Part shown: piece after piece, positions 14,839 to 58,970 of the stretch
How the letters are laid out: every line of letters begins with the position of its first letter
How positions within the stretch are numbered: the first letter of the stretch is position 1
Assembly (NCBI GenBank): GCA_025558095.1
Contig: JAIVFI010000002.1
Span: forward strand, 496,001-560,000
DNA: 64,000 bases
DNA from: Hyaloraphidium curvatum SAG 235-1
Lineage: Eukaryota; Fungi; Monoblepharomycota
Reading direction: 5' to 3'
Translations under genes and position numbers: made by a program
The notes under the pieces: generated by a model
What the model saw: the letters and a program-made list of their open reading frames with translations, nothing else
Told to the model about the DNA's origin: nothing
Databases searched by the model: none

Positions 14839-16000
14839 TTATGGCATCCAATCCAAGAATAGATTGATAAAGTTTGGGCTAATGATCATCAACGTCATCT
14901 TGAGTGACATTTGATCCATCATCAATGGGGTGCTCATGCATGGCCTGTATGTGTCGAGCAGGTGGGTCAAAGCCTGTGGCTGCAACAACCCCTCAAAATG
15001 AACTTTGCTTAGCTGCGTTCCGTTGGCGTACTGCATCAAAAACGACGAGTCACTCTCTTCTTGAATAAACTTGGGGAACAGGGCGCAAAGCTCAGGAACC
15101 GGGGACACAATCTTATAGAAGAAGATTAGCGGTACTGGATTTGAAATCATAGAAACCCAGGCTGCAGAAGAGAGACTCGTCATACGCGTTGAATGCTTTG
15201 TCATCAATGCAAATGTCACCGTACGGCTTGCCAAAGTGAATTTCGTCATACTCGATGCCCAGCTGCCGCAAGCTCTCCAACGTTGCGAGCCCCACATTCT
15301 TCACAGCTCTGCCAACGTTGTGACGCGATGTAACCATGTTGCGTGCTGTGCAAATGATGATTTCATGACCCTCGGTTACGGACACAAAACTGGGCAATAC
15401 GTTCCACACGGCTAACGGTGCTGTAATCTTTGTAATCATTCGGCCACGTTACCAGCGTGTTGTCTAAATCAAAGACAATTCGCAGCTTATAGTGCTTGAG
15501 CTTAGGCGAGTTGAGGCCGATGTCTTTATCTTATCTGTGCAAAACGCCCGGCAGGTAATGGCACTTTACAGGCAACCCTCAAGCAATCATGCGGCTAAAT
15601 ACATGCGAAAGGAAAGATTCACCTGTGTCATCCTTGATGACTTGCTTGCAAAAGTCGCGGCACACGTTCAGGTTGGCAAATTCGTAGCCCCCAACGCAAA
15701 CGTAATCGGAAAATGGCGACGCTCTTCAATGTCGGTCACGCGGTCCTTGTCATCGAAGTTGATAAAGGAGTAGTGAGATAGACCAGTTGGATTACTGCTG
15801 TAGAGCAAAAAGTTTCCCGGCGGCAGAGCTCCCAAATCCAGCCCCTCGTACACGTTGTCACTGTCAAGCACAAGTAGTTGATCATCGCCGTACAATGCCT
15901 CGGGTGTGAGCGCCTGGCATCCATATCGTTGCCGTTGGCACACAGGAAAGCGATAGGAGTGAAAGAACACACAGAGGGATGAGACAAGCTGCCTTGCCTT
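14839..16000 (-). pseudogene. Fragmented nucleotidyltransferase + HAD capsule-biosynthesis phosphatase (EcbF/BcbF-like) + kinase-like gene
   Basis: LLVLDSDNVY...YSFI...VTDIEE; LRIVFDLDNTLV (HAD motif I, about 15452-15488); GHEIIICTARNM...HNVGRAVKNVG...YDEIHFGKPYGDICIDDKA; then YKIV...LFPKFI. Several frameshifts, stops and deletions. Confidence 0.8.
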
Positions 16001-18580
16001 CCGATCTATCTGATCTGGCTGGCTCTTTTAAGCTAATTGTCTTTTTCCAGCTCGTCATCGTCATCCTCCCTCGGGTAAGATCCCTGAAGAAGAGTGGCTG
16101 CTTGTTCTTTGTCCTACATCACCGTCTCTGGTCAAGAAAACATGGAGCAAAGCCTCATCCTTTCTACTTACTACATCTGATGCCGTGCCTCTCTCCAAAT
16201 CACCCGTAACAGGAGCCGATGTCTCCGAGGCAGGATAGCGCATGTAAATGTACGTCGCAACAAACACGTTGCACACGCCTATAGCATTTGTGTAAGAAAT
16301 CGGAGCCGAAAAAAGAGCAGCTGACAAGAGGAGGAGAATGGCCGTCGAAAAGGTGGTGGCGACGCTCTTGACAATGGCATCGGCATACTTATAGACAGCG
16401 GTAATCACGATACCCATCAGAGAGTTGAGAACAACGACAAGAATGGCAAGGAAACTGTATCCCTCGAAAAAACCAGGCTCCGGATTCTCATTTCCGGCCA
16501 GCGCGATCGACTTTATCAGGAAAGCTACATTTGTTGAACAGAAAGCCAGTGAAATATAGCAGAATATTGATAGCGTGCAAGGACAATGCTGCTGTCTTCG
16601 TCACATGATCTGTAGGCTCCATTTGCCGCCGTCATGGTGACCTGGACCAGCAGGATGATGTAGCCCACCAGTGGTGCCGCCACCGTCTGCTTGCACTCAT
16701 TGTACTGAGATTGCACGAGCCCAAGCATTTGAATCGCCATGGCAATCCATTGCAATTGCGAAATTGGTCTCGATAGTATGAAGAAGAGGATGAACGCCGT
16801 CAAGAAAGTGGACCCAGACTTGACGAGCTGAATTGTACCCGGCGATGCCAGCAGAAAGGCATAAAAAGCAAGATGGTTATTAACCGCGTACGAGAAAGAC
16901 AGAAGACTTATGTTCCGCAGCAGTGTCGGTGACACAGAGGTTCTGAAATCGTTCACGATTGTCCAAAGCTCATTTAGGAAACTTGCCGGGCTCCGAACAC
17001 TCTCGCACTTCCTGTCCAAGGACGACACATACAGTACGGCAGAAAGCCCAAGTTTAAAGAGTTCGGACATTGCCAGAGCTGAAGCCTGAGAGAACTCATA
17101 GCGACCCCCTCTTTGCGAGAGCTTGTAAACCAGTGCAACCGAAACTTGTATTGCCACAAGCGACGCAAACACAAGCAACTTGGGGCCCAAGGCCGTCGCT
17201 CGCGAGGCCATGTCTGTAGCTTGTAGCTTAGCCTGGGGCTGGGCAGTAAGGCACTTATTGAGTGGAATCAAAACTTTCGCAAACTTTCATTCGCGCCCGA
17301 AGCGCGCCGGGTTCCGGGGGCGAAGCCCCCAGGCCGGGGTTAGGGGGCTGCCGCCCCTTAAAGCTTGGGAGAAGGAGGATTTGGGCCCCGTTTGGCCGTG
17401 GAGGATGTGGGACCCGCGATCGCCGCCGGGACAACGGAGGCTTGGTCGAGCCATGTCACAGTATAGAGTGTCCAGAAACTACAAGTGCAATCAAGAACTG
17501 TCCCTCTTGTTGCGCTTCGGTTTAGGCCGAATCACAGCCATCCCCTGCTCCTGGTTGGGCGGTAGTCAACGCTGTTGCAGGATCTGCAACAGCAATGAAA
17601 GACGTCAGGCGATTCTGGTGTGCTGCGGGGCAGATGGCTGCTCGCGAGATGTCTTCTGATTGTGGTCGACAGTCCTGGCGGACGAACGCCTCCCGCCGGA
17701 GTTCATCGCCGAATTGACCGAACGCTCCTGCGGGAGAGCACCTCCCGCGGAGAATCCATAGCCGAATTGATCGAAGGGTCCTGCGGGCGAGCGCCTCCCG
17801 CGGAGCTTCGTTAGTACAAGCATGCTGGACGGTCGCAATCGTCTCACCTCCAGGGTCGTCGACAACGTAAGTCCGACGGTACTCATCCAAGCTCCGGAGC
17901 ACCTCGTACCTCATCATTGCTGTTCCGATTCGGAACCCCTGTCAAAGATGGCTAGGACCTTGCGCACCATCTCATACGGGCTCTGCGCGGGCGCCTGGTG
18001 CAACACTACGGCCCACCTCGTCGCAACGCCAAGGGGCCGCGCGATGAGCTGAACCGCTGCCATGGCAATGTTCAAGTGGCCGTCGACAAGCCGGCAGCCT
18101 TCTTCTTGCCCGCCGCAGAAGACATCCTTCAACTTGCTGCGTTCACGGCTCGTCGGAAGGAAGGCTACGAAGGGGCGAAGCTCCGAGAGCGTGCTGAAGC
18201 GAATCCGAGGCTGATCCGAGCCACAACACCTCAGCGGTCGCACAAAGTGTCGGGAAAGTCGATCGAGTCCAAAAGGCCCCGGCTCGGCGCCGGCAGGTGA
18301 AGAGATTCGGGGCTCCGCGCGAGTCGGGGACGCGGGACGCTGCGGCCGACACGAAGTCTCCCGAGCGTCAAGCGGGTCCGGCCGACCCCGTGGCAGTTTG
18401 CTCAGATGTTTCTCCGGCAGATTGGCGTTCCCAGAGCGGCCGCAGAGAGGTCGGGGGGAGCGGGTGCAATTCTGTTCTGGAAGCCGCTTAGAGCCGTTGC
18501 GACCTTCTCGGGTCGGGAAGGCGGCGGGTAAAACCGCGCAGAGAGTCACATGCGGGGGTTCGTTTTTCGAACCTCCATCA
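15875..18580. repeat. Segmental duplication copy 1; copy 2 is 32784-34010 plus 46579-48058
   Basis: Near-identical direct copies starting TAGTTGATCATCGCCG. Looser similarity continues to about 18650/48127 and again at 18738-18838/48522-48608. Confidence 0.95.
16033..17211 (-). pseudogene. SLC35A-type nucleotide-sugar transporter, copy 1 (frameshifted)
   Basis: Multi-TM protein with SELFKL, YAVNNHL, VYKYADAIVK. One intron 16114-16171 gives ...EDDDELEKDN*. Versus copy 2 it has a 2-bp deletion near 16610 and one extra T near 16530. Confidence 0.85.
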
Positions 18581-18874: not shown

Positions 18875-19009
18875 TAGCCTAGGACAGTTCGAAAGGTTTT
18901 TTTTTCGTATCCGAGCACACCGCCGCATTGTCTAACCCTAACCACGGAATATAAACCTCTGCGCGCCCCGTTGAAGAGGCAAAGTGCTGCTACTACCGCG
19001 TATGGCCCG

Positions 19010-21932
19010 ATGAAAGTGCCATGCCGAGTGTTCGGAAGGGCGAGGACGTCTATACTGAACTATGCCATCTGCCTCGGACTCGGCCTATTCTTGCTCAGGC
19101 CTTGGGTTAGCCACGTGGCTCCTGTCCGAAGCTTTTCTCCTGCCCTGGAGTCGTTGTCCCGAGGGGACCGTTTTGTGCTTGTATTCCCAGTTGTTGCAAA
19201 GGACATAGCAAAGGTAATCTCCGACTGCATTTGCGTATGTATGATACCGGATCACTGAGACAAGGAAGATGGAGACTATCCTTGACACCTATGGCGCCGT
19301 CGGCCAGCCTTGCAGCGGCAGGTTTACGGCGGTCACGGACTTCTATTTCCTCTACAATCTGATTCAAGACGGCACAGTCGATGCCCTCAACCGAAAACTG
19401 GCGCAGTCTTCTTCTTTTCGCAAAATGTCGCGATGCTTCCATGAGACGGGCGTCGTGTTTGCGAACCTCTCTGGTTTGTTTTCTAGCCAGGTCCTATGCC
19501 TGACAATTGACACCCCCCCCCCCAGGGATTGAAGACGAATATCCCGCAGGGTGGGTATGGCGGGAACTTTTCTGGGCCCCGACTCACTCTCTATTGTTTG
19601 GAGGCCTTCCAACATGTTTTTCAAGCTCATAGAATCACCGGATCTCAAGTGGTTTCGAAGTAGGTATAAACTTGCGTTTTGGGCGGAGTCGGACGTTGGT
19701 GAGTACATCTGGCCGCAGTTATGATTCAGTCGTTTGACAGCTGGCTTTAGAACCTATTCGGCCCATGTGGGCAGACGCGCTCTACATTGAGGCAACGTTA
19801 CCGACTTCCTACAACGGCCTCGAACCGGACTATTGGATGAAAGGAAGCGTATACAGAGGTCGTGGTTTTGACCAAGCAGTTCTTTATCGGGAAAACTGGA
19901 ACTGGTAATGCACAAGTTTCTCTGGAGTGTGAGCTTCCCTAACCGTGGCTGCAGGGTCGACCACCTGAATGGTAACGCGTTTTATCGCTTGAATGATCCT
20001 GAGTTTGAAGACTTCGTGAGAATCACAAAGGTAATTTGCTGCGTTTAGTCAGGTCGTTGAGTCTCACCGTGCTGCCTAAGGAGTACGAACCACCAAATGA
20101 TTATTGGAAGCCTTTTGACATTGCGATGATGTAGGTTTGCTCCTTCTATGTCGAGCTGCCACTGATTGCAAGAATTCAACTAGGCGCGTTTTGAACTCCA
20201 ATCCTTATGGATGGGTGATTCGGTGAGATGCTTGCCATCATCGCGAATACTGATGGCTGACTTGTAGTTTCAGCCAATATGCTGCCCGGAAGTGAGCCTT
20301 CACGTTGCACACTATTCCTTTGCTACTTACATTGGCGACAGGTTCGTCTCGACTGATTTCATCCAGCATTTTGGTTGGTATTGTCGCGGGTATGTGATAA
20401 CGTGGCTCACTCCTTGCGGAAAAGGCTTTTCGAGTGACGCAGCAACGGCAGCCGCTCTTTCTAATCGGCGGACTAGCTTTATCCATGGCAAACCGGGTTC
20501 GGCGGGCGACGTAGCCTACAAAGCGAAGTACAATGCGCTGGGCCAACCGCGTCTTCGGAACGTCTCGGAGGCCGAGAAATTAGGAGCAATTCGTCCCGAG
20601 CATAAGCTCTGTGTGCTGTTGCGGACTTTCAAGGTTGATTTGCCGTGGGTGTCCTCCGGAATCCAATTTGGTTGTCATTAATGGTTCCTGTTGTGTCTAG
20701 CTATGCTAAGCTAGCAGCCAAATCAGCACTCAAGCACATATGGCACCTCAACGAACTTGTGGTCGTGGTTGTGCAGAAGGATCTCGATTTGGCACAGAAG
20801 GCCTTTGAAGGGAAGGATTTCCTTCAGGTGCGGGTTGTGGCGGAGCAAGAAGTATTGCAAAACGGTCATATGCAGCAAAAGTAAGCTTGCCAGAGACGTG
20901 ACGTTTCAGCAATTGAGTTAACTCTGTGTTTTCCAGGTATACGAAGGTGATGCAAGATGAATCTGGCGGTGTGCACCTTTGATTGACGTCATCAGAAGCT
21001 CAACGCCGATATCTACTGCCCGAAGGACACTCGCTACGTATTCCATCTGGATTCGGACGTGGTTCTTACTCGTCCGCTGCTGGTGCGAGATGTGTTTTTC
21101 CGCGGCCGACCCATGGTGCAATACGCCCCGTACGAGTCGATGCCGTCTGGCGACCGGCAGTGGCAGGCTGGCACCTCGAGCGCCGTGAAACAGAGTGTTA
21201 CTTTGGAATTTTCCAGGTAGAGTGCCCTGATCACGTCACATACATTCGACTGTTGATTTCTTTCCTGCAGGACGAATGCGCATGGTAAAGCACCTCGTTG
21301 CCTTCCCTCGTACGTTGCTAATGAACTACAGTCTACCCAATCGAGGCGTACTCTCGCGTTAGGGCTTTCTTGGAGAAGGCGCACGGTGTCAGTTTGATCG
21401 ACTTTCTACGAACGAGACGAGGGCGCCTTATGGAAGACGCCTTCGAAGCGGGTAACTTTAGCCAGTCGACTGTGACCACGGATAACCTTTTCAGTGACTT
21501 CAACACAATTGTAGGTCTTGTCAAAGAAGTGATACACTAACATCTGAGACGGTCTGACAGGGTGCATATCTCTACCATTATGAACGTCACCTCGTCTCTT
21601 TTGTTCCTTTCTACGTGAACAACCCGACGATAATCACAAGTTTTGCCGATGTGTTTCCAGTGACGCCGTGGCTTGTGTGCCAAGGGAATGCGAGATTGAA
21701 CCTAGACTACAGCATGGTTGCATATGGACTTTCCCTCCTGGATAGGGAACTGGCGGCGCTGAAACGTGCCATGGGTTGGTGCTTAGCGTCCATTTCAAGG
21801 AATCTCTTTAATTTTTGTCGCCTAGATGGAGGATGGGAGGCTGGTTGTTGGGAGGTTATTGCTCTGTTCCAGGAGCTGCAGAAGAGAGCAATCACGGCTC
21901 AGGAACGCTTTCAAAGAGAGAAGCCCAAATGA
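19010..21932 (+). CDS. Type II membrane protein with two glycosyltransferase-like domains, intron-rich
   Basis: TM YAICLGLGLFLL. Domain 1: DEYPAGPSNMFFKL...FWAESDVEPIR...YWMKGSVYRG...HLNGNAFYRLND...PFDIA. Domain 2: VLLRTFKVDL...GHMQQK...ADIYC...VFHLDSDVVLTRP...QWQAGT...FSDFNTIG (DxD; DUF6492-like by recall). The exons I checked splice in frame. Confidence 0.75.
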
Positions 21933-24817: not shown

Positions 24818-26464
24818 ATGGCCACTGGCTCGACTGTGTACCACATAACTGAAGCATTGGTTGTTTTCGTTCTGTTTGCCCTTCTATATGCTGGGACGCA
24901 TTTGTCAAACGACGATGTTTCGAGAACGGAGGACACGCCCCAGGAGATTACACAACCACGCGAAATGGTACCCTCCATCACAAACTATCCGGTAGCGCTC
25001 AGGTCATTGATTACCAAAGCCAACTACACTGGGCTTTCGAATCTCCTATACTTCGGTGACACTCTGCGATTCACTCTTTGCACAAATCCTGTCAACGAGT
25101 CCATACGGTGGGCCTATGCCACCTTGGAAAGCGCAGACACAATTTCCGGCGTTATTGGAACCCAAATAGCGTCATGGTGCTACGAGTTTCAGCACACGTT
25201 TGATCTGCCGGGGACGTACTCGATTTCCATCGATCTAATCACGCCGAAAGGCTTTATTCCCGTACAGGACAGGCGAGGTTTCAATATTTCTGTCACTGGA
25301 GCATCATTTAGGAGGAGAGAAAAACCAAGATGCAGAAGCGGGCCAACTGACAATGGATTATGGCTGCGGTGTGGTTCAACATTCTCTGCTGGCATTCGCA
25401 ACTGTCTCCGGTGGGGCTGGGTATTCGAACCGTCAGACTGCCATTACGAGATCTGGTCCCATGGTGACCTGAAGCGAAAATTCTTCAGCAACAGCAAGGC
25501 AGGCAAAAGATGGATTGTTTTTCTGGGTGATAGTGTGATGCGAGGGGTGTTTCTATCAGCTGTGGATCTCCTATTGAACACAACTGGAGGAGAACTTCAC
25601 ACGATTGCGAAATGCTGGGGCAGGCTAGATGTAGAGTGGGGCAGGATTCGACTTACTTACCAGGATTTTCGTGCTTTTTCATATGGTAGGTATCCACCAT
25701 GGTCATCTCACCAAGATTTTGAATGCCATGGAAACGTCACTGCACTGGACTTCTTTCAACTTCAGGAGAATGGCACAGAGTTTATGCGGCGCCTCTTCAG
25801 CTCAACCACCCGGGCACCCACAGCAGTTGTGTTTCCCTTGCACATCGCTACCGACCCTAGAATTGCAAGTAACCTACTCCAGCTCCCGCAGTCTTACACC
25901 GGACAACTAATTGCCATCGCTTTCCCTAACTTGGTGCAATCTATTGGGATTCCACCCCAGAAAGTCCCACCACTGATGCAGGAAGCACAGAGTATTGTCT
26001 TTTTACATCCTGTTGACTTTGTTTATGCTCCGATACTTGCCATTCCACTGCTTCGTACAGGTGAAGGGGGAGTGACGTCGTTGTCCCAGCATTGGCACAG
26101 AGATACTCGGCAAGGAGAACCTTGGGGCATCGATGGACTCCTTACTGACATGTTGGCTCAGGTAGTCTTCAACCAAGCACTGGGTGCTAAACTTCCAGGG
26201 TATGCAATTTCGTCAAGCGTGGAAGAGTCTCGCATCTGTATGGACTGTCCTCCTGGACTTCTCCCCTTTCACATTTACCCAGAGCCCAACATGACATGCC
26301 ACAGTGGAGTCATAGGTGACAGAACGAACATATCGGTTGGTCAGCATGTTCATGCCGCCCCGAAATGCCCGGAATCTTGCATGCAAAGGCGTCCCACCCA
26401 CAATGTAGCCACACAATCCGGTGTTGTTGAAGGAAGAATATGTCACGCAGAAGTTATGCCTTGA
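24818..26464 (+). CDS. Type II membrane SGNH (NXPE/PC-esterase-like) putative polysaccharide O-acetyltransferase
   Basis: TM ALVVFVLFALLYAG; Ig-like FDLPGTYSISIDL; WVFEPSDC; WIVFLGDSVMRG (GDS nucleophile motif); C-terminal QHWH. Intact 548-aa intronless ORF. Confidence 0.75.
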   Translation: MATGSTVYHITEALVVFVLFALLYAGTHLSNDDVSRTEDTPQEITQPREMVPSITNYPVALRSLITKANYTGLSNLLYFGDTLRFTLCTNPVNESIRWAYATLESADTISGVIGTQIASWCYEFQHTFDLPGTYSISIDLITPKGFIPVQDRRGFNISVTGASFRRREKPRCRSGPTDNGLWLRCGSTFSAGIRNCLRWGWVFEPSDCHYEIWSHGDLKRKFFSNSKAGKRWIVFLGDSVMRGVFLSAVDLLLNTTGGELHTIAKCWGRLDVEWGRIRLTYQDFRAFSYGRYPPWSSHQDFECHGNVTALDFFQLQENGTEFMRRLFSSTTRAPTAVVFPLHIATDPRIASNLLQLPQSYTGQLIAIAFPNLVQSIGIPPQKVPPLMQEAQSIVFLHPVDFVYAPILAIPLLRTGEGGVTSLSQHWHRDTRQGEPWGIDGLLTDMLAQVVFNQALGAKLPGYAISSSVEESRICMDCPPGLLPFHIYPEPNMTCHSGVIGDRTNISVGQHVHAAPKCPESCMQRRPTHNVATQSGVVEGRICHAEVMP

Positions 26465-27063
26465 GGGTATCCAGCGGTTAACAAACTACCAGTTCCCGAC
26501 GTTCGCCCTAAGTGGCGCGAGTTTCTTATGGCGCCGACTCAAAGGTTGAGCTGAGTAGCGACATGGTTCAGGAGCATGGTGCACTCGACCTCGGGGGCGG
26601 CATTCTTATGCTGAAGTACATATAAACAGTACCCAGGAGATGCCGTTCTGGACTGTGGAGCAAACATAGGGTCGCACGGGTTACTCTTTGCCGCTGCCGG
26701 TTACGAAACACATGCGTGCGAGCCGTCCTAATTCCCCATACCAACACATCCGCCCGATCGGCCGCCGCTGCCTTCGCTGTCGCTCGCTTCTGCAGTAAAC
26801 GCTTCAGGACAACGTCCTTGCTCCCGGGTGATGCTCCTTGCCCGAGGCTCCGCGATACCGTTCGCCGGGAGCTCTCAGGGCAGAATGGCATAGGGACAAC
26901 TCTAGCCCTTCGCTCCACCGGAGGAGGTTCGCCGCCTGCACGGGCCACTCGTCCTCGTGTACTTGCGGGCTCTTGCCCAAAGAAGCCGGCGCTGGCGTTT
27001 CTCTAGTAAGAGGTCGGTCCATTGATGGGTTGACGAAGGGTCTGGTCCTAATTCATGGCGTCC

Positions 27064-29325
27064 CTACAGGTCCAGATGGCATGCCTTCGGTCTCGGAATC
27101 ACGTCTGGTGCCCCTGAAAGCATGCTAAGACCGCATTGGGTGCATCTCTCCATTTGCATCAGATTGATGACCTTGCCGTACTTGCTATCCCGTGGCTCCG
27201 AAAAGTGTCTTGCACACTCTTTTGGAAGCACTGTGAAGTTAGTCCAAGACTCGACAGCATATAAATGTGGTTCATAGATTGTGCCGTAAACAGCCAGTGT
27301 GTTGAACTCGCTAAACATGGTGTTGTTCGGATTCCATGAAAACTGTGGTCTGAAAACGTGCTTAACCATGGCATCAAATGGCATCCTGTGCAACGTCTCA
27401 ATATGCTTCCTCGCACCAAGTATAGTGCTGCGGTGCAGTAGCACTGGGGTCCTCGAGATGTAGTAATGCAAGGCTGTTTTGACACCAAGGGCAAATTCTG
27501 TGCCATGTTTCCACATCAATGTGCCATTGTTGCCAGCAAAAATCACTTTGCCGTTTCTCATAAAGCAGTCTGCTGTCACGGGGCGCTGGAACACAGCGTC
27601 AGCCTCAACAAACAAAATAAGTGTGTCGGATTCTTGAAGATACTTGTCGGCTGTGAACTTCGCATATACTTGGTGAAAATAGTCATCTCGCCCCAGTCGC
27701 CTGTCGCGCTCTACTTCAGATTCATTCGGTGCCACCGCACCTCGCACCACTTCCGGGACATCCATGGGTACGATTTGGGCGTACGGTGGTGCCGCGTGCC
27801 GCACATCGTCCACCTCATTACGGACAACAGGTATGACTATGCGCTTGTAGCATGGCATGAGAAGCTCGAAGTTTCGGAACCAAGTGGCTGTCAGCCCAAC
27901 ATCCCGACTGGTCAACATGAAAAACACAGTTGCTTCGTCAAGGAAAGGGTCCACACGGCACACACGGCCAAAATGTTTTTCTGAGTACCGCCATCCCAAT
28001 GGTAATGAACCTGGCCCAGACTGCAAACAGGTGACTAACGACGGGTCTGCGGTAATTTCTGAAGTTAGCACATTGGCAATTTTCTCGGCAGCATGACCAT
28101 CCCCATAGGGCCAAGTAATCCGGGACATGGAGTCGCGTAGGCCGTTTTCGTTAAACAGTATAGCCGTGACTGCTTGCACTATCAAGGACGTGTTTGTTCC
28201 CACCAGCTTCGCGACACCGTAATCGATACCCTCTGGACGCTCCGTGACCTCCCTGAGAACAATGACAGGCACATGAAAGCTTGTTGACTCTTCTTGCAGT
28301 CCTCCCGAGTCCGTCACTACAATATCTGCGTATGTCCCAAGCACGGTCACGGTGACGCCATAGGCAAGAGGTGGCAGGAGGTGCATCCGATCTACACCAT
28401 AGAACTCTTTCAAAAATACGTCATGCACAGCAGGGTTGGGATGCACAGGGAGCAAGACATGCAGGTGCTGGTGCATATCAAGTAGCAAGCGTACAGCGGA
28501 AATAATGTTCGTAAGTTCGCCGTGGTTTTCGCGTCTGTGGCACGTCAATAACATAACTAGCTCCCCGTTTGCACGCCGCTGTCTCTCTAAATGTGATATG
28601 CCGTGGTCAACAAAGAACTGCACGAAAGCTGGATTTTGCGGCTGGCGCGACATTTCAAGCACCGAATCAATGACGGTGTTGCCCGTGACCCATATCCTGT
28701 CTTCTCGGACCCCTTCCGTAAGAAGCGCACTCGCCGCCCGCTTCGTGGGCGCAAAGTTAAAGCATGACGCGGCGGCGATTGACTTCCGATTGAACTCCTC
28801 CGGGAAAGGAGCTCCCACACGATAGGTCCGCAACCCGGCTTCAACATGTGCCAGTGGCGTCCGTGCATAAAAGGCAGCGTGCGATCCTGCAAGCGCAGTT
28901 GTCGTGTCTCCTTGCACAAGCACAACACGAGGACGATAGTGCTCAATCGCGCGCTCAATTGCAAGAGCACAGCGACTGAAAAGGCTCAACAAAGACTGGC
29001 CTGCTTGCATCGCGTTGCTGAGGTGTGGCCCATGCGTTTCAACCGGGATAGCCAACTCTTTTAGAAGTCCATTTAGCATTTGTGCGTGCTGTCCAGTGGT
29101 GATTACCGCAATCGAAATGCCATCTCGACGTCGTATCTCCTTGATGACAGGAGCCAGCTTTATGGCTTCTGGCCGTGTGCCAACAACAGCCAGGATGTCA
29201 ACGTGGTTCTTGCTTCCGGGTGTCCTAGCTTCGATCCGTCTAGACAAGTAGATGACAAGGACACTTAATGTGACCACCAAGAGCAGAGTCGCGAGCGAGC
29301 GCAATGACCGAAGTCCTATCCGCAT
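27064..29325 (-). CDS. Signal anchor + non-hydrolysing UDP-GlcNAc 2-epimerase (WecB-like) + glycosyltransferase-like domain, copy 1
   Basis: TM LATLLLVVTLSVLVIYL; GTRPEAIK, TGQH, QGDTTT, HVEAGLR, PFPEEFNR, HRREN, TDSGGLQEE, ERPEG, PYGDG; then YFHQVYAKFTADKY...FVEADAVFQRP...FSEFNTL. 753 aa, intronless. Confidence 0.92.
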   Translation of the reverse strand: MRIGLRSLRSLATLLLVVTLSVLVIYLSRRIEARTPGSKNHVDILAVVGTRPEAIKLAPVIKEIRRRDGISIAVITTGQHAQMLNGLLKELAIPVETHGPHLSNAMQAGQSLLSLFSRCALAIERAIEHYRPRVVLVQGDTTTALAGSHAAFYARTPLAHVEAGLRTYRVGAPFPEEFNRKSIAAASCFNFAPTKRAASALLTEGVREDRIWVTGNTVIDSVLEMSRQPQNPAFVQFFVDHGISHLERQRRANGELVMLLTCHRRENHGELTNIISAVRLLLDMHQHLHVLLPVHPNPAVHDVFLKEFYGVDRMHLLPPLAYGVTVTVLGTYADIVVTDSGGLQEESTSFHVPVIVLREVTERPEGIDYGVAKLVGTNTSLIVQAVTAILFNENGLRDSMSRITWPYGDGHAAEKIANVLTSEITADPSLVTCLQSGPGSLPLGWRYSEKHFGRVCRVDPFLDEATVFFMLTSRDVGLTATWFRNFELLMPCYKRIVIPVVRNEVDDVRHAAPPYAQIVPMDVPEVVRGAVAPNESEVERDRRLGRDDYFHQVYAKFTADKYLQESDTLILFVEADAVFQRPVTADCFMRNGKVIFAGNNGTLMWKHGTEFALGVKTALHYYISRTPVLLHRSTILGARKHIETLHRMPFDAMVKHVFRPQFSWNPNNTMFSEFNTLAVYGTIYEPHLYAVESWTNFTVLPKECARHFSEPRDSKYGKVINLMQMERCTQCGLSMLSGAPDVIPRPKACHLDL

Positions 29326-29535
29326 GGCGTTCCCCCCAGAGCTAATTGGAGTTAGCGTCGTGGTTTTGGTTTTCGCAGTTAGTGGTGCAGGGAAGCGCAC
29401 CGAAAATGTTCTAAACGGAGTTTAGGGTCGGGCTCTATTGCATTTTTCTCCAAAGCTTGCCCACCCCGCGCGCGCGCGCAATCAGGCACCAAACGTCCTC
29501 GAATCTGTCCCCCCCCCAGCCCACGGAGGAAGGCA

Positions 29536-31970
29536 ATGGCGCGTCCGCAGGACCCGGAAAAGTTTCAGATTTCATGCGCTCTATGTGACACTTGCGTCGT
29601 CTGCAACAGGAACTGCAGGCAGCGCGACGCCCACAAGTCCACGCTCCAGAAGGCCGGCCGCCCTTCCGACTACTTGCGCTGGATCACCTTGAGCCGTGAC
29701 AATGCCGAAGTCTGCGGCACGAGAATCAAGGGACAGAAGAAGCTCCAGGCCGGCGACCACTCCGTGTGCAAGACGTGCTACGAGGCAGTCCGAGCTGCAG
29801 GTCGGTTCCCGTTTGAATTCTGGAGGCAGCCGGACTGACAGCACTCCTCCCCTTCAGGAAAACAAGGCACTACTACGAGCAATGAGGACGTCGACAGCGC
29901 GGACGCGGAGAGCTGGGATTTCAAGTGCGTCTGCGGTGCCGAGGGGCACGACTTCGACGACGGCAAGCCCATGATCGATTGCGACGAGTGCAAGGTTTAC
30001 CAGCACACAAGGTGCAACGGCATCAACAAGAGGCCCGGCAAAAGCATGAGCTGGATTTGCTCGGGCTGCCAGCAAGGGAAAGGTGGGCACTGGATGGTGA
30101 TTCGTCACGACCGTTACCATCCCCAAGCCACCACGCAGAAGATGACGCCCAACAGGCTCCGAAGAAAGCACGCACGAGCAAGAAGCATCAGACGCAGAGC
30201 ACCGTACACAAGCCCGCTGTGGTTATCGAGGAATCCGAGCCGGCATCGGCACCTGTCGACGACACACCGTCCAGAATCACCCACGCTCTGCCCAAACCGC
30301 CGCCCACCCCTTCGAGCGAGTCGTCCGTGGTGGTGGAGGCCGCCTACTTCGAATGGGGGCCCAAGCGGAAGAAGGGAGGAAAGAAGGCAGACGAGAAACC
30401 GACGAAGCCATTGACGGCCAAGGAGAAGGCCGAGCTCGCTACCATCTATGAGGGTATGGAATCGCAGCAATCGCGCTTTTTCTTGCATTACGCTCACACG
30501 CGATGTTCCAGTCAAGTTTGCGGCTGTAACTGGCACCAAGATGATGGGCTCTACGATGTCCACCGACCAGCTCGATCTGGGGCCGATTGACAGCATCACC
30601 ATCGCGGCGTTCTTGGGTCAAGCTGCCAAGCAGATCCATAGCCCCAATTGGCACATCGGCATATTCGTTCCGCACCGCTCGGACGGGGCACCTCTGCTCA
30701 CCTACATCTCGGGCAACCATAACTCGACAAAGCCCAAAGACGTGCATGTCTGCCACGTTACCGATGACGAGGCGCTTCGTAACTTGCTGCGCCGGCGGCA
30801 GCTCATTCCGGGAATCGACATTGTGGAGGTCAAGGGCATCACGTTTGGCTTGTCCCAGGCCGGCGCTCTCGGTGCCCGCCCCTGTTCGACCCCGCCGCCG
30901 TCCAGGCTGCCACACAGACAGCCAACCCCTTTGGGACGTCGACCGGTGTGGTAGGATTCGGCGTCTTTGCTGGTTATGTCTATGTCGACGAGACTTCCGT
31001 GGCCCGAGCAGGTCACTGGCGGGAGAGAAGTTGGAACAGCTGGCACAACATCCAGCCTGCCCGATCGTTTGTCTAAGCTCAACAAGCTCTACATTCCCGT
31101 GTGCAAGACGAGGGGCCACACGCACGTCGGGGACCTGATGACCCGGGTTCACGGCCCACGCTGTTTCCTGATGCACGGTATGTGCCACGGCCAGTTCGAC
31201 CTTCAGGACTCCCATCATTGGGTACGGATGGCCGTATGTATCGTTACTTTACCGCGTTGTCTTGTACGCTTACACCGAATTCAGATAGAGACGGAAAAGA
31301 AAGGCTTGACCCCGACCGACCCCGACTACGTCGACTTCAAAAGCCCCCCGGGCGGAACGACGGCTCTCGACGCCATTCGGGCATCGCTTCGGAAGCAAGG
31401 TCTTGCCAGGACCGTTCCTGTCATGTCCAAGCCGGACTGGGGCACTGGTGGTGCCCCCCGAGAACAGATGACGGGAACCCGTTCATGAGCCCCCTCGCTG
31501 CCCCCAACGCGGGCCCCTCGCCAGGTGCGACCGTGCGTACAGCGTCTTTCACACCCATCTGGATGCATCTCCATATTGCAGGCGTGACTGAGCCTATGGC
31601 CTTTACGCCCGACGGCCCCATGGGCAACTTCAAGCCGACCTACTCCGTTTCGCTGAGCAAGCGCAACGATGACGGCGAGATTGCCGCATCAGCTCCGTTG
31701 TGGCCCAAGGAGAGACTTCTTGGGGACGAGACCGTCTGGAGCATCGTCACGAAGTGTCCCCAGTTCAAAGATCACCACAAGGCCGAGTGGCAGGACCCTG
31801 CAGGGGAAAAGACCATGACCTTTCACCTCCTCCCCTTCGAGATGCTTTCTCCCCAGCAGAAGCTCATCGACGTTCCCGCCGTTGAAGGGCACATTGCTTT
31901 GTACTGCCTCCCTGGGAAGCGCACCAAGGATGTTGTCATGGTCGGGTCCGATCTGTACAGCAACTCGTGA
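29536..31970 (+). CDS. Zinc-finger + PHD-finger protein, multi-exon, transposon passenger
   Basis: Exon 1 has CALC...CVVC...CKTC. Exon 2 has the PHD finger WDFKCVCG...DDGKPMIDCDECKVYQHTRC...WICSGC. 3' exon structure is uncertain. Confidence 0.7.
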
Positions 31971-32783: not shown

Positions 32784-34010
32784 TAGTTGATCATCGCCGT
32801 ACAATGTCTCGGGTGTGAGCGCCTGGCATCCATATCGTTGCCGTTGGCACACAAGAAAGCGATAGGAGTGAAAGAACACACAGAGGGATGAGACAAGCTG
32901 CCTTGCCTTCCGATCTATCTGATCTGGCTGGCTCTTTTAAGCTAATTGTCTTTTTCCAGCTCGTCATCGTCATCCTCCCTCGGGTAAGATCCCTGAAGAA
33001 GAGTGGCTGCTTGTTCTTTGTCCTACATCACCGTCTCTGGTCAAGAAAACATGGAGCAAAGCCTCATCCTTTCTACTTACTACATCTGATGCCGTGCCTC
33101 TCTCCAAATCACCCGTAACAGGAGCCGATGTCTCCGAGGCGGGATAGCGCATGTAAATGTACGTCGCAACAAACACGTTGCACACGCCTATAGCATTTGT
33201 GTAAGAAATCGGAGCCGAAAAAAGAGCAGCTGACAAGAGGAGGAGAATGGCCGTCGAAAAGGTGGTGGCGACGCTCTTGACAATGGCATCGGCATACTTA
33301 TAGACAGCGGTAATCACGATACCCATCAGAGAGTTGAGAACAACGACAAGAATGGCAAGGAAACTGTATCCCTCGAAAAAACCAGGCTCCGGATTCTCAT
33401 TTCCGGCCAGACCGATCGACTTTATCAGAAAAGCTACATTGTTGAACAGAAAGCCAGTGAAATATAGCAGAATATTGATAGCGTGCAAGGACAATGCTGC
33501 TGTCTTCGTCACATGATCATTGTAGGCTCCATTTGCCGCCGTCATGGTGACCTGGACCAGCAGGATGATGTAGCCCACCAGTGGTGCCGCCACCGTCTGC
33601 TTGCACTCATTGTACTGAAATTGCACGAGCCCAAGCATTTGAATCGCCATGGCAATCCATTGCAATTGCGAAATTGGTCTCGATAGTATGAAGAAGAGGA
33701 TGAACGCCGTCAAGAAAGTGGACCCAGACTTGACGAGCTGAATTGTACCCGGCGATGCCAGCAGAAAGGCATAAAAAGCAAGATGGTTATTAACCGCGTA
33801 CGAGAAAGACAGAAGACTTATGTTCCGCAGCAGTGTCGGTGACACAGAGGTTCTGAAATCGTTCACGATTGTCCAAAGCTCATTTAGGAAACTCGCCGGG
33901 CTCCGAACACTCTCGCACTTCCTGTCCAAGGACGACACATACAGTACGGCAGAAAGCCCAAGTTTAAAGAGTTCGGACATTGCCAGAGCTGAAGCCTGAG
34001 AGAACTCATA

Positions 34011-34714
34011 GACGCACATGCTGTCCTGGTCACGACGACATTTGCGCGGCCATCCGCGCGGCGCTTCGCTCCATCCCGCTCCTCCGCGTGCACCCCATGC
34101 CGCCAAACCTCCTTGCGCATGGCTACGAGACTGTCACCCCGCCCACGCCTGCGGATGCTGGCCGCCTTGGCGACATTCTCATCACGCACCGCGAAACCCG
34201 GAAACGGTGGTTGCTCGAGATCAAGACCCTCACCTCTATGGCCCATTTGCACACGGGCCTGGTCTTCTCGGTCCCGGGCCACGCAGTCGAACGGCGGGTC
34301 GAGGCCGCCAGGAAGGACTACTCCCGTTTCGCCTTCAACGCCAACTTCTACCCTCTGATCGTGCTTGCTTTTGATTCGTACAGCGCTGTCTCTGCCACTT
34401 TCTCGCGCTTCTCCTCGGAGATGGGGCGCATCCAGTATCCCGGGATCGTCGGCCGCGATGGGCAGCCCGTGGACCTCGATGGCCTTTACTCTCGTTTTGT
34501 GCGGCGCTTCCGCGAACGGATCGCGGTGGCCTGGGCTCTTGGCGTCGCGGCCCAACTCCAACACTGGCTTCAGCTGTGCACCGAAGCCGCCGCTGTCAAC
34601 GCTCCGGCCCCCGCGCCGGTCGCTTTTGGTTTGAATGTAGATGAGGAGCTGATTCTTGGGGCGTAGGGGGATTTCTAAGTGTACGGTGGGATTGCTAGCT
34701 CCTCATTACACACA
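34011..34714 (+). mobile_element. Internally deleted copy of the CRE-like non-LTR element
   Basis: The first 14 nt GACGCACATGCTGT (equal to 34715-34728) join through a GT microhomology to sequence matching 42831-43509. Ends CATTACA-CACA. Confidence 0.9.
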
Positions 34715-37498: not shown

Positions 37499-40400
37499 AT
37501 GAGCCGCACGCCGCTCCTGCCTTACAGCTGCCACCGCTGCGCGGCAGCTTTCGCCAACATCGGAGCTCTATCTCATCATCACCAATCTTGCATCGACGGC
37601 GACGTGCCGATGGCGGAGGCGCCTGCTGAACCCGGCCTCCATGCGTGCCCGGTCGATGGTTGCCGCTTCCAGCCAACTCCAAACAAAAACAAACGGGACG
37701 GTCATCTTCGGGTCACACGGAGCCCGGAGCACTGGTTGGCAATGCAGCGCCTGTCTGCCGATGCGTTGCGCGCCATGGGGCTAGCGCGGTGCGGGGGTTG
37801 CCGGCGTCCCTACGCCGCAAACGCCTCTGGTGCCGGTGTTTCTGGACAGCACACCTCGTGCAACCCGGACGCAGCTAACCCGCCACTCGGCGTCTCTTTA
37901 GCTTCGCTTCCACCCGATCTCGTCGAGTTCCTCGACCGCGTGCGTGCCGAGCGGGCGGCTGCCACGGGACGCACGGAGGGACCGGCGTCACCGGCGGCAT
38001 CGTCGGCATCTCCCCGTGCTTCACCACCCGCGCCCGCGCTGATGGCGGCCCTTGCGGCCGCCCGGGTTGCGGCCGATGCCCCGCAGGACGGCCAGGCGCA
38101 ACGGGCGGCGCTGGCGGCGGCGGCGGCGGCGGCGCGTGCCGCCCCGGACAGCGGTGATCCCCCAGGCGACGACGGCGCGCCGGGCGGCAACGCAGCGGCT
38201 GGCGGGCACGGCAACGGCGGCAAGCCGGGCGCCCCGGGCGACGGTGGTCCACCCTGGGGTCCCGGGCCTGATCCGCCGCCGGAGCCGCTGAAGCACCGCT
38301 ACCGGACCACCACCTGGAGCACGCTCGCCTTCCGGGCCAGCGAGTCTTTCCAACGGGCCTACGAGGACCCGGCGGCACCGGAAACCGACCTGCACCGCAC
38401 TCTCACCGCCTACCTTGCGTTTGGCGGCTACGTCATGTCGGGGGACTACATGTACGAGCAGAACTACTTTGCCGCCCGTCAGGTCAACCGGGGCGCGCGG
38501 CGGGACGGGTTGCGGCCGCTCAACTACCAGCTCTTCAAGGCCATCGTGCTTGCCGCCTTGAAGGGCGCTCCTGGTGCTGCGTCCGCGGCCCTCTCGGGGG
38601 AGGCCGTTCCGGCTGGCTTCACGCCCACGCTGCAGGCGGAACTGGAGGAGCTGTACCCGGGGCCGCGGGAGGGAGAGCCGCTGTGTCGGCTGTCTCTGCC
38701 CCCCAACGCGCCCGCACCCTGCCCTGCCTACACGGAGGACATCTGGACCCGGTTGCGCCGGAAGAAGGACGGCGTGGGTGCCGGCATGTCGGGTTTCAGC
38801 ATGGCCAAACTTTTCATCGTGCACAACTGCGAGAACGACGCGACGCGGCGGAAGCTCCGCCCGCTGGCGGCCATGGTGCACGGCGTGTGCACTGGCCGAC
38901 TCGACACCCCCATGCTCCGGCCGCTCCTCACGGATCAAATCCTCGTCCCGTTGCTCAAGCCGGAGAGGGGGCTCCGGCCGATTGGCATTATGGAGGGCAT
39001 CACGCGGCTCGCGGGCTCGTATCTGGCCGTGCGGTACAAGGATCTTCTGAGGAAGCTCCAACAGCAGGAGGACCTGGGTCACGGGGTGGACGGGGGCGCG
39101 GAGGCGACCGCCCACGCGGTGAACGCGTGGCTGGCGGCCTTCCCCGACCACGTCGTCATGAAGGTCGACTCTAGGAACGCCTTCAACACGCTGCGCCGCC
39201 TCTTCGCGCGCGAGGTGGTCCGCCAGGTGCCTCAGCTTATCCCGTACTACAACCTCGTTTACTCGCGCCCTTTATTCCGCGACTGGCGCTCGGCGGAGCT
39301 CCTTTTCCGGATCACCATGTACGAGGGCAACATCCAGGGCGACCCGCTGTCGTCTGCCATCTTCTCCTGCGCCATGAGCCGCATGCTGCGGCCCATCCGC
39401 TCTGGGCACCCCGACTGCCTCATCCTCGGGTACCTCGACGACCTCACCGTGGTCGGGCCGCTCGACTCGGTCATGGCCATCCTGGGAGAGGTGCGTGACG
39501 GCCTTGCTTCCCTCGGCATGACCCACCGCCCGGACAAGAGCTACCTGCTTTCGCTCTCGACGGACCCGGCCGTGCTGGAGCGGGTGCGCGCGGCCGGTGC
39601 GGCCCACAACATCCGCGTCGCTGGCTTCCCGCCTCACGAGGCCGACCCCGAGGTGCATGCCACGGCGTCGGCCCCGGGCTCGCCTGATTTCGCTCGCTCG
39701 TGCGGCCTCAAGGTGGTCGGTGCCCCGGTCGGCACCCCTGCCTATGTGGAGTCGTTCCTCGCGGCCAAGATCGACTCCATTGCCGCTCTTCTCGATGAAA
39801 TCGAGCGCGCTGCGCTCGGCTACGCCATGCCGGCCGACATCCCCTCCCTCCAGGGCCTGTACTCCCTCCTCCGTCTCTGTGTGACCCAGCTCTTCTCGTT
39901 TTGGCTCGGCATTCTCCCCCCCTCGGTTACCCAACCCTTTGCTCGACGTCTCGACAACGCGCTTTTCACCACCTTCTTGCGCTTGCTGGGAGTTCGGGCC
40001 GAGGATCTGGATCTGCTGTCGGTGGAGGGTCGGACTGTGCGGGAGCAGGTATTCTTGGGTCTGCACTACTCGGGGCTGGGGCTTCTGTCATCGGAGAAGG
40101 TGGCCTCGGCGGCTTACCTGTCTTCAATCAACCTCACGGCGGGCCCCTTGGACGCCATGCTTGGTCTTCGAACCTCGGCCCGGGGTGTGGGCGTGGAGCA
40201 CGTGCGGGAACTGGTTCCCGTCATCAAGGCCCTCCGCCCTGCCTTTGAGCGTGTCGAGGATGACACGGCCGCAGCGTACGCCGAGGCTGCGCGTGCTGGG
40301 CAACCGGTGGGCGCCGCGCCCGCCCGCCGTACGCTCCCTGCGGACGCCAGTTTCTTCGCTCAGCCGGTCTGGCACGGCCTGCAGAGCGACCTCACGCGTC

Positions 40401-43400
40401 TCGAGGACCAGCGCCGCCTCGCGGCTCTGATTGCCTTGCAACCCGACACTTCTGCTGGTCTTGTCAGGAGCGCCCGGTCGTGGTCGCACGGCGACCGGCA
40501 CAGCTCGAGGCCTGGCGTGGGCACGAGATCTCCGTAGGGCTTAACGATATCTAGACATTGGAACTACATGACTGTTCTATCGGTTTATATAGTCCGGGCC
40601 GCGCAAGATGCCGCGTAAGCGGAGTTCGCGGGAACCCCGGTGAACCTTCTGGAACCTCCCAGAAGACCCGGCCCCTTGCGAGTCCCTGACATCATCTCCC
40701 TCCTTCGGCGCGCTCGTCCCGAGCGCGCAACTTGAGCCTCCCGACGCGCAAAGCTTGAGCGCGGCGGTGGCGGTGAAAACTTCGCGGTGTGGCAAGTGTC
40801 GTGGCAAAGCTTGACCGCGAACCTGAACATGGCGTGGATCTTTGAGCATGGCAATGGCATAAACGATGAACCTTGACGTGGCTTGGCGTAAACGATGAAC
40901 CTTGACGTGACTTGATGCATGGCAGGCGTGGGATCGGTCACACGACGAGGGAGCCTGATCTCAGGCGTCGAATCCTGCTGGGGGTGGATGTAACCACAAT
41001 CGATTGACGAGCCGATCCTAGGTGACCAGTGCTTGCTCGGGGGCGGCGAACCGATGAAAACGGGTCTTCTCAACACAGGGGTGTAGTACCGCAGCTCAAT
41101 CGGTAATCGGTCCGAGAGCACCTGTGGCCGAGAGGGGTCGATGCGCGTCGGCTCAATGAGATAGATGCGATGGAGACGTGAAACATGAGACCATGAGACG
41201 TGAAGGCCGTGGTGCAGAGTCGGTGAGAGTGACGTTCGATGGTGAAACCGTGAAGCAGGATGCGTGGAGATGCGTGGAGCGAGCAGGATCACTTGGCAGG
41301 AGGCGGCGGGCGGGCGGAGCGGTCGTTGCATTCGGCCTGGCGGTGACCCTCCTTGCCGCAGTAGAAGCAGAGTCCATTGATACGGCGGCGCGCACGCTCC
41401 TCATCAGAAAGAGGCCCGTGGCGTAGGCTCGCGATGTCCATGGGGACGGGCCCGTCGGTGACGGCGGTCCCGGCCGAGGTGGCTGTCGCGTTCGTGGTCG
41501 TGGAAGCGGATGCCGGGAACGTGGTAGTCGAACGAGGGGGGATGCCGTGAGCAGGCCAGTAGCCCTGCTTCTCGAGACGGCGGCGGTGCAGCTCGTCGTC
41601 GACGTCGATGGCGATCTTGATGAGCTCGGAAAGCGTGGCGGGCTTGTCGCGAATCATGAGGTCCTTGACGGCGTCCTTGAGGCCCATGCGATACTGCGCC
41701 ATAAGGGCGGCGTCATCATAGCCGGTCTTGGCGGCGAGAAGACGGAATTGCGAGGTGTATGCTGAGGCTGAGCTGGTCTGGCGTAGCTCGCGCAGCTTGG
41801 CCTGGGCCTTTCCGGCCTCATCCGTCTCGCCGAAGTTGGTTTCGAGTTCGCTGATGAACTTGGCGTAGTTCGTGGTGATATCGGCGTCGTCCTCGACAGC
41901 GGAGAACCAGCTCAGGGCGGCCCCCGAGAGGTGGCTGGCGATGAAGGCGATGCGCTGACCGTCGGTGCTGTACATGCCGGGGTTTGCGTGGAAGTTGATC
42001 TTGATCTGGGTCATGAAGTCGCGGAGCTTGGAGCGGTTGCCATCGAACTTCTCCGGGGCGGCAACCTTAATCCGGGGAAGGGCAGCTTCCGGCGGCGATG
42101 GGGGCAACTGCTCGCTCTGCCGGGTCCGAGTGGGCTGGCCCGGCGGCGGCGCGAAGCGGCGGAGTTCTTGGAGTTCTTGACGGAGGGCGTTGACGCTCCC
42201 AAGGAGCTCGCTGAACTGAGCGTCCTGGGTGGTGAACTTGGCGGCGAGGGCCTGAACGAGCCCGGGAATGTCCGTGGGGAGGTCCATGGTCTACTCCTGG
42301 TCCGTCGTGGGCGACGGGGCGGGAGGAATGTCTAGATAATGTCAGGAGCGCCCGGTCGTGGTCGCACGGCGACCGGCACAGCTCGAGGCCTGGCGTGGGC
42401 ACGAGATCTCCGTAGGGCTTAACGATATCTAGACATTGGAACTACATGACTGTTCTATCGGTTTATATAGTCCGGGCCGCGCAAGATGCCGCGTAAGCGG
42501 AGTTCGCGGGAACCCCGGTGAACCTTCTGGAACCTCCCAGAAGACCCGGCCCCTTGCGAGTCCCTGACAGGTCTGGAGCGCCGCAAGCGGCTCGTCCAGG
42601 CGCAGGACGGCCTGTCGGCTTTCCTGACTGCCTCTCCCGCGCTGCTTGCCAACCACATTCGCAACAACTTTTTCCGCTTACTTGTACGCTTCCGGCTTTG
42701 CCTCCCGCTCCTTTACGAGGCCGACTACCCTGGTCTTTCCTTGCCCTGCCGGCGGGGCTGCAAGCGATCGGCCATGTCGCTGACGGGGGAGCACGCATTC
42801 TCGGGCTGCTATGGCCGGGATCTCTTTAGTCCTGGTCACGACAACATTTGCGTGGCCATCCGCGCGGCGCTTCGCTCCATCCCGCTCCTCCGCGTGCACC
42901 CCATGCCGCCAAACCTCCTTGCGCATGGCTACGAGACTGTCACCCCGCCCACGCCTGCGGATGCTGGCCGCCTTGGAGACGTTCTCATCACGCACCGCGA
43001 AACCCGGAAACGGTGGTTGCTCGAGATCAAGACCCTCACTTCTATGGCCCATTTGCACACGGGCCTGGTCTTCTCAGTCCCGGGCCACGCAGTCGAACGG
43101 CGGGTCGAGGCCGCCAGGAAGGACTACTCCCGTTTCGTCTTCAACGCCAATTTCTACCCTCTGATCGTGATTGCTTTTGATTCGTACAGCGCTGTCTCTG
43201 ACACTTTCTCGCGCTTCTCCTCGGAGATGGGGCGCATCCAGTACCCCGGGATCGTCGGCCGCGATGGGCAGCCCGTGGACCTCGATGGCCTTTACTCTCG
43301 TTTTGTGCGGCGCTTCCGCGAACGGATCGCGGTGGCCTGGGCTCTTGGCGTCGCGGCCCAACTCCAACACTGGCTTCAGCTGTGCACCGAAGCCGCCGCT

Positions 43401-43472: not shown

Positions 43473-43569
43473 GGGGATTCCATGGTGGGATTGCTAGCTC
43501 CTCATTACAAAGCGAAGCCGTAGCCCACGCCCGCCGGGGAGAGCCTAGCAATAAGCAAAGTACATAGGC

Positions 43570-58850: not shown

Positions 58851-58970
58851 GCGATGTTGGATAGGACCAACGCCCCAGTTGTTGCGCGCCTAACCAATTC
58901 GCCTATTCAATCCAAATCCTTGAAGTACTTTACTTGTTTGCATACCGACGGCACTCACAAAAAGCACGCC

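Follow-up and report, generated by a model that had tools for sequence, protein, structure and literature searches.

The window analysed here, 64,000 nt of the early-diverging, chytrid-like monoblepharid fungus Hyaloraphidium curvatum (C2:496001-560000 of its 31.9-Mb assembly), carries two copies of a gene whose product joins an N-terminal hydrophobic anchor, a WecB-type UDP-N-acetylglucosamine (UDP-GlcNAc) 2-epimerase and a predicted transferase domain in a single polypeptide. Copy 1 lies on the reverse strand at 27064-29325; open reading frame (ORF) analysis of the window found its frame uninterrupted over 27064-29400, with the first ATG at 29325, giving an intronless ORF of 753 aa. Behind a basic tail comes the sole hydrophobic peak of the protein, at residues 10-28 (29242-29298, reverse strand; Kyte-Doolittle 19-residue mean 2.35), a candidate type II signal anchor; the basic tail and one transmembrane helix described in an earlier, sequence-only reading of this DNA are therefore upheld. 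The epimerase domain occupies residues 43-421 (28063-29199) and the C-terminal domain (C-domain) residues 460-733 (27127-27948), both on the reverse strand; the whole protein has five N-x-S/T sequons (N378, N534, N600, N667 and N696) and eleven cysteines.

The same reading had called the first catalytic domain a complete, non-hydrolysing 2-epimerase with all the WecB motifs, HRREN included, and profile searches bear this out. The protein scores 349 bits against the NCBIfam wecB equivalog TIGR00236, for which the cut-off is 210, and only 65 bits against a cut-off of 236 for the hydrolysing NeuC model; Pfam Epimerase_2 (PF02350) covers residues 62-420 (E 8e-88). Solved bacterial enzymes (5enz, 3dzc, 1f6d) are matched at E 1e-70 to 1e-77 (5enz at E 3e-77), and in alignments with the Staphylococcus aureus (5enz) and Vibrio cholerae (3dzc) enzymes the columns GDTTT, HVEAGLRT, PFPEEFNR and HRREN are identical or conserved. 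These contain, in GDT, HVEAG, PEE and HRRE, the Asp, Glu, Glu and His which we presume to be catalytic (D95, E117, E131 and H213 in Escherichia coli). Judged by sequence, the domain is a WecB, and its predicted activity is the interconversion of UDP-GlcNAc and UDP-N-acetylmannosamine (UDP-ManNAc).

The C-domain was less readily placed. Neither the domain nor its family profile matched any PDB sequence significantly, and its sole Pfam match is DUF6492 (PF20102), at 19.5 bits where the gathering threshold is 22.9; the corresponding domains of two homologues discussed below, P0001 (13.3 bits) and P0003 (15.2 bits), likewise fall below it. In the family alignment of 48 homologues, however, DUF6492 is matched by 25 members, with E up to 5e-9, while Stealth_CR2 is touched by four and GT2 by four; and of 30 matches by language-model features in the ESM Atlas, 29 were DUF6492 clusters, mostly from phages and giant viruses, whose models superpose on ours with a TM-score of 0.87. 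Profile and model evidence together identify the C-domain, we suggest, as a distant member of this uncharacterised family, for which our literature search found no paper mentioning it. An exhaustive HMMER search of 1.84 billion representatives returned 76 relatives, only three of them close: P0003; P0121, a stand-alone 361-aa form with a signal-peptide-like start; and P0122, which is the second half of another fusion (L007, below). A search of 2.9 million viral contigs yielded no close relative, and metagenome contigs gave only one distant related locus. The gene context of bacterial DUF6492 members was uninformative, owing to short contigs or unrelated neighbours, and one supposed relative was a GT2 enzyme.

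With the family alignment as input, AlphaFold gave a C-domain model with pLDDT 88 and pTM 0.88, which was compared with 48,161 solved chains. The top four matches were all Stealth enzymes, which are sugar-1-phosphate (hexose-1-phosphate) transferases: the zebrafish (Z 15.5), human (15.4) and fly (14.7) GNPTAB proteins and Mycobacterium tuberculosis CpsY (14.9). After Stealth in this ranking came yeast Kre2/Mnt1 of family GT15 (Z 11.2) and then many GT-A enzymes at Z 9-10; Foldseek ordered them differently, with GT6 enzymes first and CpsY sixth. From the model we confidently assign the C-domain a nucleotide-sugar transferase fold of GT-A type, as structure prediction had been expected to reveal if the glycosyltransferase-like label was right. 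The motif E574-A575-D576 (27598-27606, reverse strand), singled out earlier as DxD-like, follows a beta-strand that spans positions 125-129 of the domain, in keeping with GT-A membership; D576 is invariant in all 48 sequences. Other near-invariant residues of the family are K556, D560, W605, R639, H646 and the S672-E673 pair within FSEFN. In addition, the eukaryote-type clade, to which the fungal domain belongs, has six conserved cysteines, an insert ahead of FSEFN and an extended C-terminus.

The fusion is not peculiar to this fungus. P0001 (757 aa; 60% identity across 95% of the query) and P0003 (687 aa; 49% identity) each have both domains in one frame; L007 is 50% identical, with one frame break that leaves its two halves in adjacent frames. 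The contigs of these relatives range from 38% to 53% in G+C content, which indicates that they come from different organisms, and the fusion is thus conserved in at least four. A tree built from 63 epimerase domains unites the four fusion epimerases in a single clade (SH-aLRT 100) with a long stem; the weakly supported sister of this clade (SH-aLRT 93) is a pair that includes P0015, an 878-aa EukProt protein of Rhodelphis marinus in which a hydrophobic N-terminal segment and a WecB domain precede a CHGN/Glyco_transf_7C transferase. Because its transferase partner differs, P0015 is probably a fusion of separate origin. Further fusions of epimerases to transferases occur among the epimerase homologues, for example P0020 and P0116, which have GT2 domains.

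Copy 2 of the gene (58854-61232, forward strand) encodes 792 aa. The two copies lie in the arms of a 2608-nt inverted repeat (left arm 26723-29330, right arm 58966-61573) that are 99% identical; since the left arm extends just 5 nt upstream from the copy 1 ATG, copy 2 has an N-terminal tail 39 aa longer before the same helix. The 34 differences between the arms are clumped: codon 2 has two and codon 530 one, codons 702-710 have nine in a stretch of 25 nt, and the 3′ flank has the other 22, while 1.58 kb between the clumps is identical in both arms; this mosaic suggests gene conversion between them. Copy 2 is represented at NCBI by P0002, a 482-aa "UDP-N-acetylglucosamine 2-epimerase", whose gene model keeps to the ORF as far as WPYG (residue 408 of copy 1; site 28102) and then runs in another frame to an early stop. 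This public model is wrong: it drops the transferase domain of about 300 aa, which is why the architecture is invisible in protein databases. The uninterrupted 792-aa ORF is backed by an RNA contig and by three homologues. The second copy, which the sequence-only reading does not mention, the truncated public model, the family placement of the C-domain and the conservation of the fusion are new here.

That RNA contig comes from sequencing run X1, which is listed as guessed RNA only and which we take to be RNA because its contigs carry two GT..AG joints (56-57 nt) in the adjacent gene and differ ten-fold in depth; the contigs give no levels, strands or ends. A 3846-nt X1 contig is unbroken over 27767-29330, crosses site 28102 and continues upstream of copy 2, and further contigs cover 27022-27195 and 27221-27735. 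Among the X1 contigs there is no splice joint anywhere in 27064-29330, so the NCBI intron after WPYG was rejected and the continuous ORF is what is transcribed. Breaks in the contigs coincide exactly with positions that distinguish the two copies (27021, 27196-27220, and 27736 plus one k-mer), which indicates that both alleles are present in the reads; a 250-nt contig of high depth moreover matches the copy-1-specific 3′ flank (26697-26946) with zero mismatches. Both copies are probably transcribed. A trans-splice or long-range splice at 29330 was also considered, and was discarded when the loose contig end mapped to 58936-58965 on the other strand, which belongs to the sequence upstream of copy 2. 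In the gene that lies upstream of copy 1, two 56-57-nt GT..AG introns (29797-29855 and 30080-30137) are seen as X1 joints, and the spliced 8480-nt contig of that gene begins about 120 nt from the copy 1 ATG, suggesting that this gene and copy 1 have a divergent promoter region in common.

What the C-domain might catalyse depends on how its likeness to Stealth enzymes is understood. Aligned by hhalign, the DUF6492-type family and the Stealth profile match over 229 columns with a probability of 95.7% (local) or 96.8% (global) and E 1e-8, or 93% with a two-sequence Stealth profile; the family DxD falls opposite the Stealth NDD, and the family RRxP....R opposite the Stealth EHxP....K. Profile comparison thus identifies the two families as homologous across the CR2/CR3 regions. 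The C-domains of the window protein, P0001 and P0003 have no match to Pfam Stealth_CR1-CR4 even at E up to 10. Two GNPTAB residues, the general base H956 and the beta-phosphate residue R986, are essential and strictly conserved among Stealth proteins (PMC9388126), as is R419 of CpsY (PMC10668966); the equivalents of H956 and R986 are invariant in the 41 of 41 Stealth sequences that we aligned. In the 43 DUF6492-type members outside the fusion clade, on which the count was made, the His position is Arg in 30, and it is R625 in the window protein; the DUF6492-type alignment contains no conserved Arg matching GNPTAB R986 or standing before FSEFN. E673, in turn, aligns with a Stealth stretch that contains no acid.

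Two chemistries can accordingly be considered. In the first, the C-domain would be a glycosyltransferase with E673 of FSEFN as its base; we prefer this and hold it to be reasonably probable, given that E673 is analogous to the catalytic base of GT-A glycosyltransferases and that the Stealth His and Arg are missing. The second, transfer of ManNAc-1-phosphate in the Stealth manner, we regard as the alternative chemistry and as fairly unlikely. Carried through to a function, it would keep the same architecture and location and have the C-domain move ManNAc-1-phosphate with release of uridine monophosphate (UMP), making a phosphodiester-linked cap or a poly(ManNAc-1-phosphate) chain: a one-polypeptide version of the CsaA and CsaB pair of Neisseria meningitidis serogroup A, of which CsaA is reportedly the epimerase and CsaB the Stealth ManNAc-1-phosphate transferase. 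The clear gap between the four Stealth structures and the next fold (Z 14.7-15.5 against 11.2), the hhalign probability of 96% and the weak Stealth_CR2 matches in several family members all speak for such a product, as does that precedent. The replaced general-base His and the beta-phosphate Arg that has no conserved counterpart speak against it, together with the near-invariant S672-E673 pair where Stealth has no acid and the lack of Pfam matches to Stealth CR1, CR3 and CR4, and on balance we think this function unlikely. The label glycosyltransferase-like, given earlier to the domain, therefore stands as regards the GT-A fold, but with Stealth enzymes as the nearest relatives a ManNAc-1-phosphodiester is a possible product in place of a glycoside.

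A second question is which side of the membrane the enzyme faces. Kyte-Doolittle scans give one N-terminal peak in each of copy 1 (residues 10-28), copy 2 (49-67) and P0001 (17-35), and no further span; the charges flanking the helix on its N- and C-terminal sides are +3/+2 in copy 1, +4/+2 in copy 2, +3/-1 in P0001 and +1/-2 in P0015. An SLC35-type nucleotide-sugar transporter gene (32970-34106, reverse strand; PF04142 100 bits, TIGR00803 59 bits; G+C at third codon positions, GC3, 0.56) sits 3.6 kb from copy 1 and is the likely supplier of lumenal substrate, and on L001, a metagenome contig with another fusion gene, the gene directly downstream of the fusion encodes a nucleotide-sugar transporter of the TPT/UAA family. 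The more positive N-terminal flank, the six conserved cysteines of the C-domain and the SLC35-type genes adjoining the fusion in two organisms make a type II, lumen-facing orientation plausible from sequence. The window also contains a partial duplicate of the transporter (16525-17271, reverse strand), within direct repeats (15875-16910 and 32784-33820) that are 16.9 kb apart and 99-100% identical.

The opposite topology would follow the model of bacterial membrane-associated polysaccharide assembly: with the N-terminus out, or with a peripheral anchor, the catalytic domains would face the cytosol, draw on its UDP-GlcNAc pool and use an acceptor that is lipid-linked or itself cytosolic. In favour of this, the WecB enzymes studied so far are known as cytosolic, the flank charges of copy 1 differ little, and the genome encodes other cytosolic ManNAc enzymes. 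However, the N-in bias is clearer in P0001 and P0015, P0121 has a signal-peptide-like start, and the conserved cysteines and the two adjoining transporter genes fit a lumenal enzyme better, so that we consider a cytosol-facing protein distinctly improbable. The other ManNAc enzymes are a third WecB of this genome, soluble (C2:209488-210675, L003; 383 bits, GC3 0.91), which is 37% identical to the fusion epimerase and placed elsewhere in the tree, among metagenomic, mostly bacterial-type sequences, and, 4-5 kb from it, an equivalog of the UDP-ManNAc dehydrogenase WecC (C2:204471-205733, L018; NF008286, 523 bits against 459). These sequences presumably constitute a separate, bacterial-type cytosolic route to UDP-N-acetylmannosaminuronic acid (UDP-ManNAcA) in H. 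curvatum. Because the soluble WecB adjoins WecC, a cytosolic pool of UDP-ManNAc is probable, and the earlier argument that a lumenal epimerase would spare the cell a dedicated UDP-ManNAc transporter is not forced.

Convergent with copy 1 lies a gene for an N-terminally anchored 548-aa protein (24818-26464, forward strand) with a GDS motif and no Pfam match; the first gene of L001, two upstream of the fusion there, is its homologue (E 1e-13). By language-model features the protein is similar to hypothetical proteins of fungi and, at a greater distance, to NXPE (neurexophilin and PC-esterase) proteins; its AlphaFold model (pLDDT 46) was too poor for a fold search. It is possibly an NXPE/PC-esterase-like glycan O-acetyltransferase, which we offer as a lead only. 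The sequence-only reading had likened the C-domain to the second domain of a gene at 18971-21929 (forward strand; the 19010 gene), and this likeness is real at the profile level: the C-domain family hidden Markov model finds a second DUF6492-like domain at 20639-21929 (best E 2e-17, in collinear fragments), but plain tblastn drew a blank. This gene has an anchor-like start, and its DUF6492-like domain is spread over at least four frames or fragments, either through short introns or through decay. Between the two copies of the fusion, the region 37499-46310 holds ORFs with reverse transcriptase, Ty3-type gag and Helitron-like N-terminal domains, and several repeats of 275-358 nt are common to 18-24 kb and 47-55 kb of the window.

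Such surroundings raise the possibility that the locus is a recently acquired, mobile or virus-derived island of glycan genes that is duplicating and decaying, with copy 1 maybe a promoter-less and functionless duplicate. The fusion, the transporter and the 548-aa gene have GC3 values of 0.49-0.56 (0.55 for the fusion) against 0.81-0.91 in other genes of the genome, among them a GHMP kinase in the same window at 0.81; the fusion is intronless and lies in a region rich in transposable elements, and the duplication, ending 5 nt before the copy 1 ATG, has left copy 1 without the sequence upstream of copy 2 and without 39 of its codons. The mostly viral DUF6492 clusters of the ESM Atlas and the frame-split neighbouring gene point the same way. 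Yet both ORFs are intact, both alleles occur in the RNA run and the 3′ flank of copy 1 is covered at high depth; the viral contigs yielded no close relative, and origin does not settle function in any case. As an explanation of the locus we find this very unlikely.

We propose instead that the fusion protein is a two-step enzyme of the Golgi or endoplasmic reticulum (ER) lumen, which would convert UDP-GlcNAc to UDP-ManNAc and then place ManNAc, or possibly ManNAc-1-phosphate, onto a glycan; we give this function a somewhat better than even chance, its orientation, donor, acceptor, chemistry and hand-over between domains being the inferred parts. A short basic cytosolic tail and a signal-anchor helix would hold both catalytic domains on the lumenal side, where the transporter encoded nearby would bring in UDP-GlcNAc. 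The epimerase domain would reversibly form UDP-ManNAc, and the fused transferase, D576 of its E-A-D motif binding the metal-diphosphate, would consume this as donor, pulling an unfavourable equilibrium forward and placing ManNAc on a glycan acceptor. That UDP-ManNAc would be the donor is suggested by the fusion to an epimerase, by Rosetta-stone logic.

Several points weigh against this proposal. The fusion by itself is circumstantial support for the binding of UDP-ManNAc by the C-domain, which moreover scores below the Pfam threshold of a family in which our literature search found no member with an activity on record. UDP-ManNAc or UDP-ManNAcA could be made in the cytosol by the soluble WecB and WecC and then imported. 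The relatives of the fusion come from unlabelled metagenomes and sequencing runs, their eukaryotic origin being inferred, and the charge difference across the helix of copy 1 is small. Bacterial WecB also requires UDP-GlcNAc as an allosteric activator, and such activation would have to operate in the lumen too.

More broadly, and tentatively, since we put it somewhat short of an even chance, DUF6492 may be an undescribed family of glycosyltransferases or phosphoglycosyltransferases off the Stealth lineage which, in Hyaloraphidium and a few unsampled eukaryotes, has been welded to an anchored WecB, so that UDP-ManNAc would be made in place in the lumen and ManNAc added to wall or secreted glycans; the neighbouring NXPE-like protein may O-acetylate that ManNAc. 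We know of no report of ManNAc in fungal glycans. If the idea is correct, it would give a first handle on the activity of DUF6492 proteins in bacteria, phages and giant viruses, the fusion partner naming UDP-ManNAc as the likely donor; it would mean that a bacterial-type ManNAc pathway has been relocated to the secretory pathway of a eukaryote, and an early-diverging fungus would be predicted to make a glycan that contains ManNAc.

With bacterial WecB/MnaA enzymes (5enz, 3dzc, 1f6d) the fusion protein has in common the full catalytic domain, the presumed catalytic residues and an equivalog-level score; those enzymes are soluble and single-domain, however, whereas the window protein is anchored, fused to a 300-aa transferase and encoded on a fungal chromosome. 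In animal GNE, too, an epimerase from this fold superfamily is joined to the enzyme that acts next in a ManNAc pathway; GNE, however, is a cytosolic, hydrolysing enzyme with a kinase as fusion partner, on a route to sialic acid. For the C-domain, the Pfam members of DUF6492, uncharacterised proteins of about 240 aa, mostly from bacteria, phages and giant viruses, offer a common fold and common homologues; unlike them, the domain is fused to an epimerase and has the six extra cysteines, the insertion before FSEFN and the C-terminal extension. Stealth enzymes (GNPTAB 7s6n and 7s05; CpsY 8j2n; CsaB) provide its top fold match, with about 220 residues aligned and homology at the profile level, and use UDP-N-acetylhexosamine donors; GNPTAB is Golgi-lumenal, and N. 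meningitidis CsaB partners a WecB-type epimerase. In contrast to these, the C-domain does not conserve the invariant His and Arg, lacks CR1, has DxD for NDD and has its own FSEFN.

The earlier statement that no characterised eukaryotic enzyme is known to be built in this way agrees with our literature search, which found nothing on an enzyme of this architecture, on a eukaryotic Golgi WecB or on Hyaloraphidium glycosyltransferases; but an anchored WecB with a different transferase does exist in R. marinus. That protein, P0015, is uncharacterised and has the same order of anchor, WecB and GT-A transferase, the last being of CHGN/GT7 type, not DUF6492. Lumenal type II enzymes that interconvert nucleotide sugars are, for their part, an established kind in plants and animals: UXS, GAE and MUR4 have an N-terminal anchor and convert imported nucleotide sugars within the lumen, as we suggest here, though they are short-chain dehydrogenases/reductases that act on UDP-GlcA or UDP-Xyl and carry no fused transferase.

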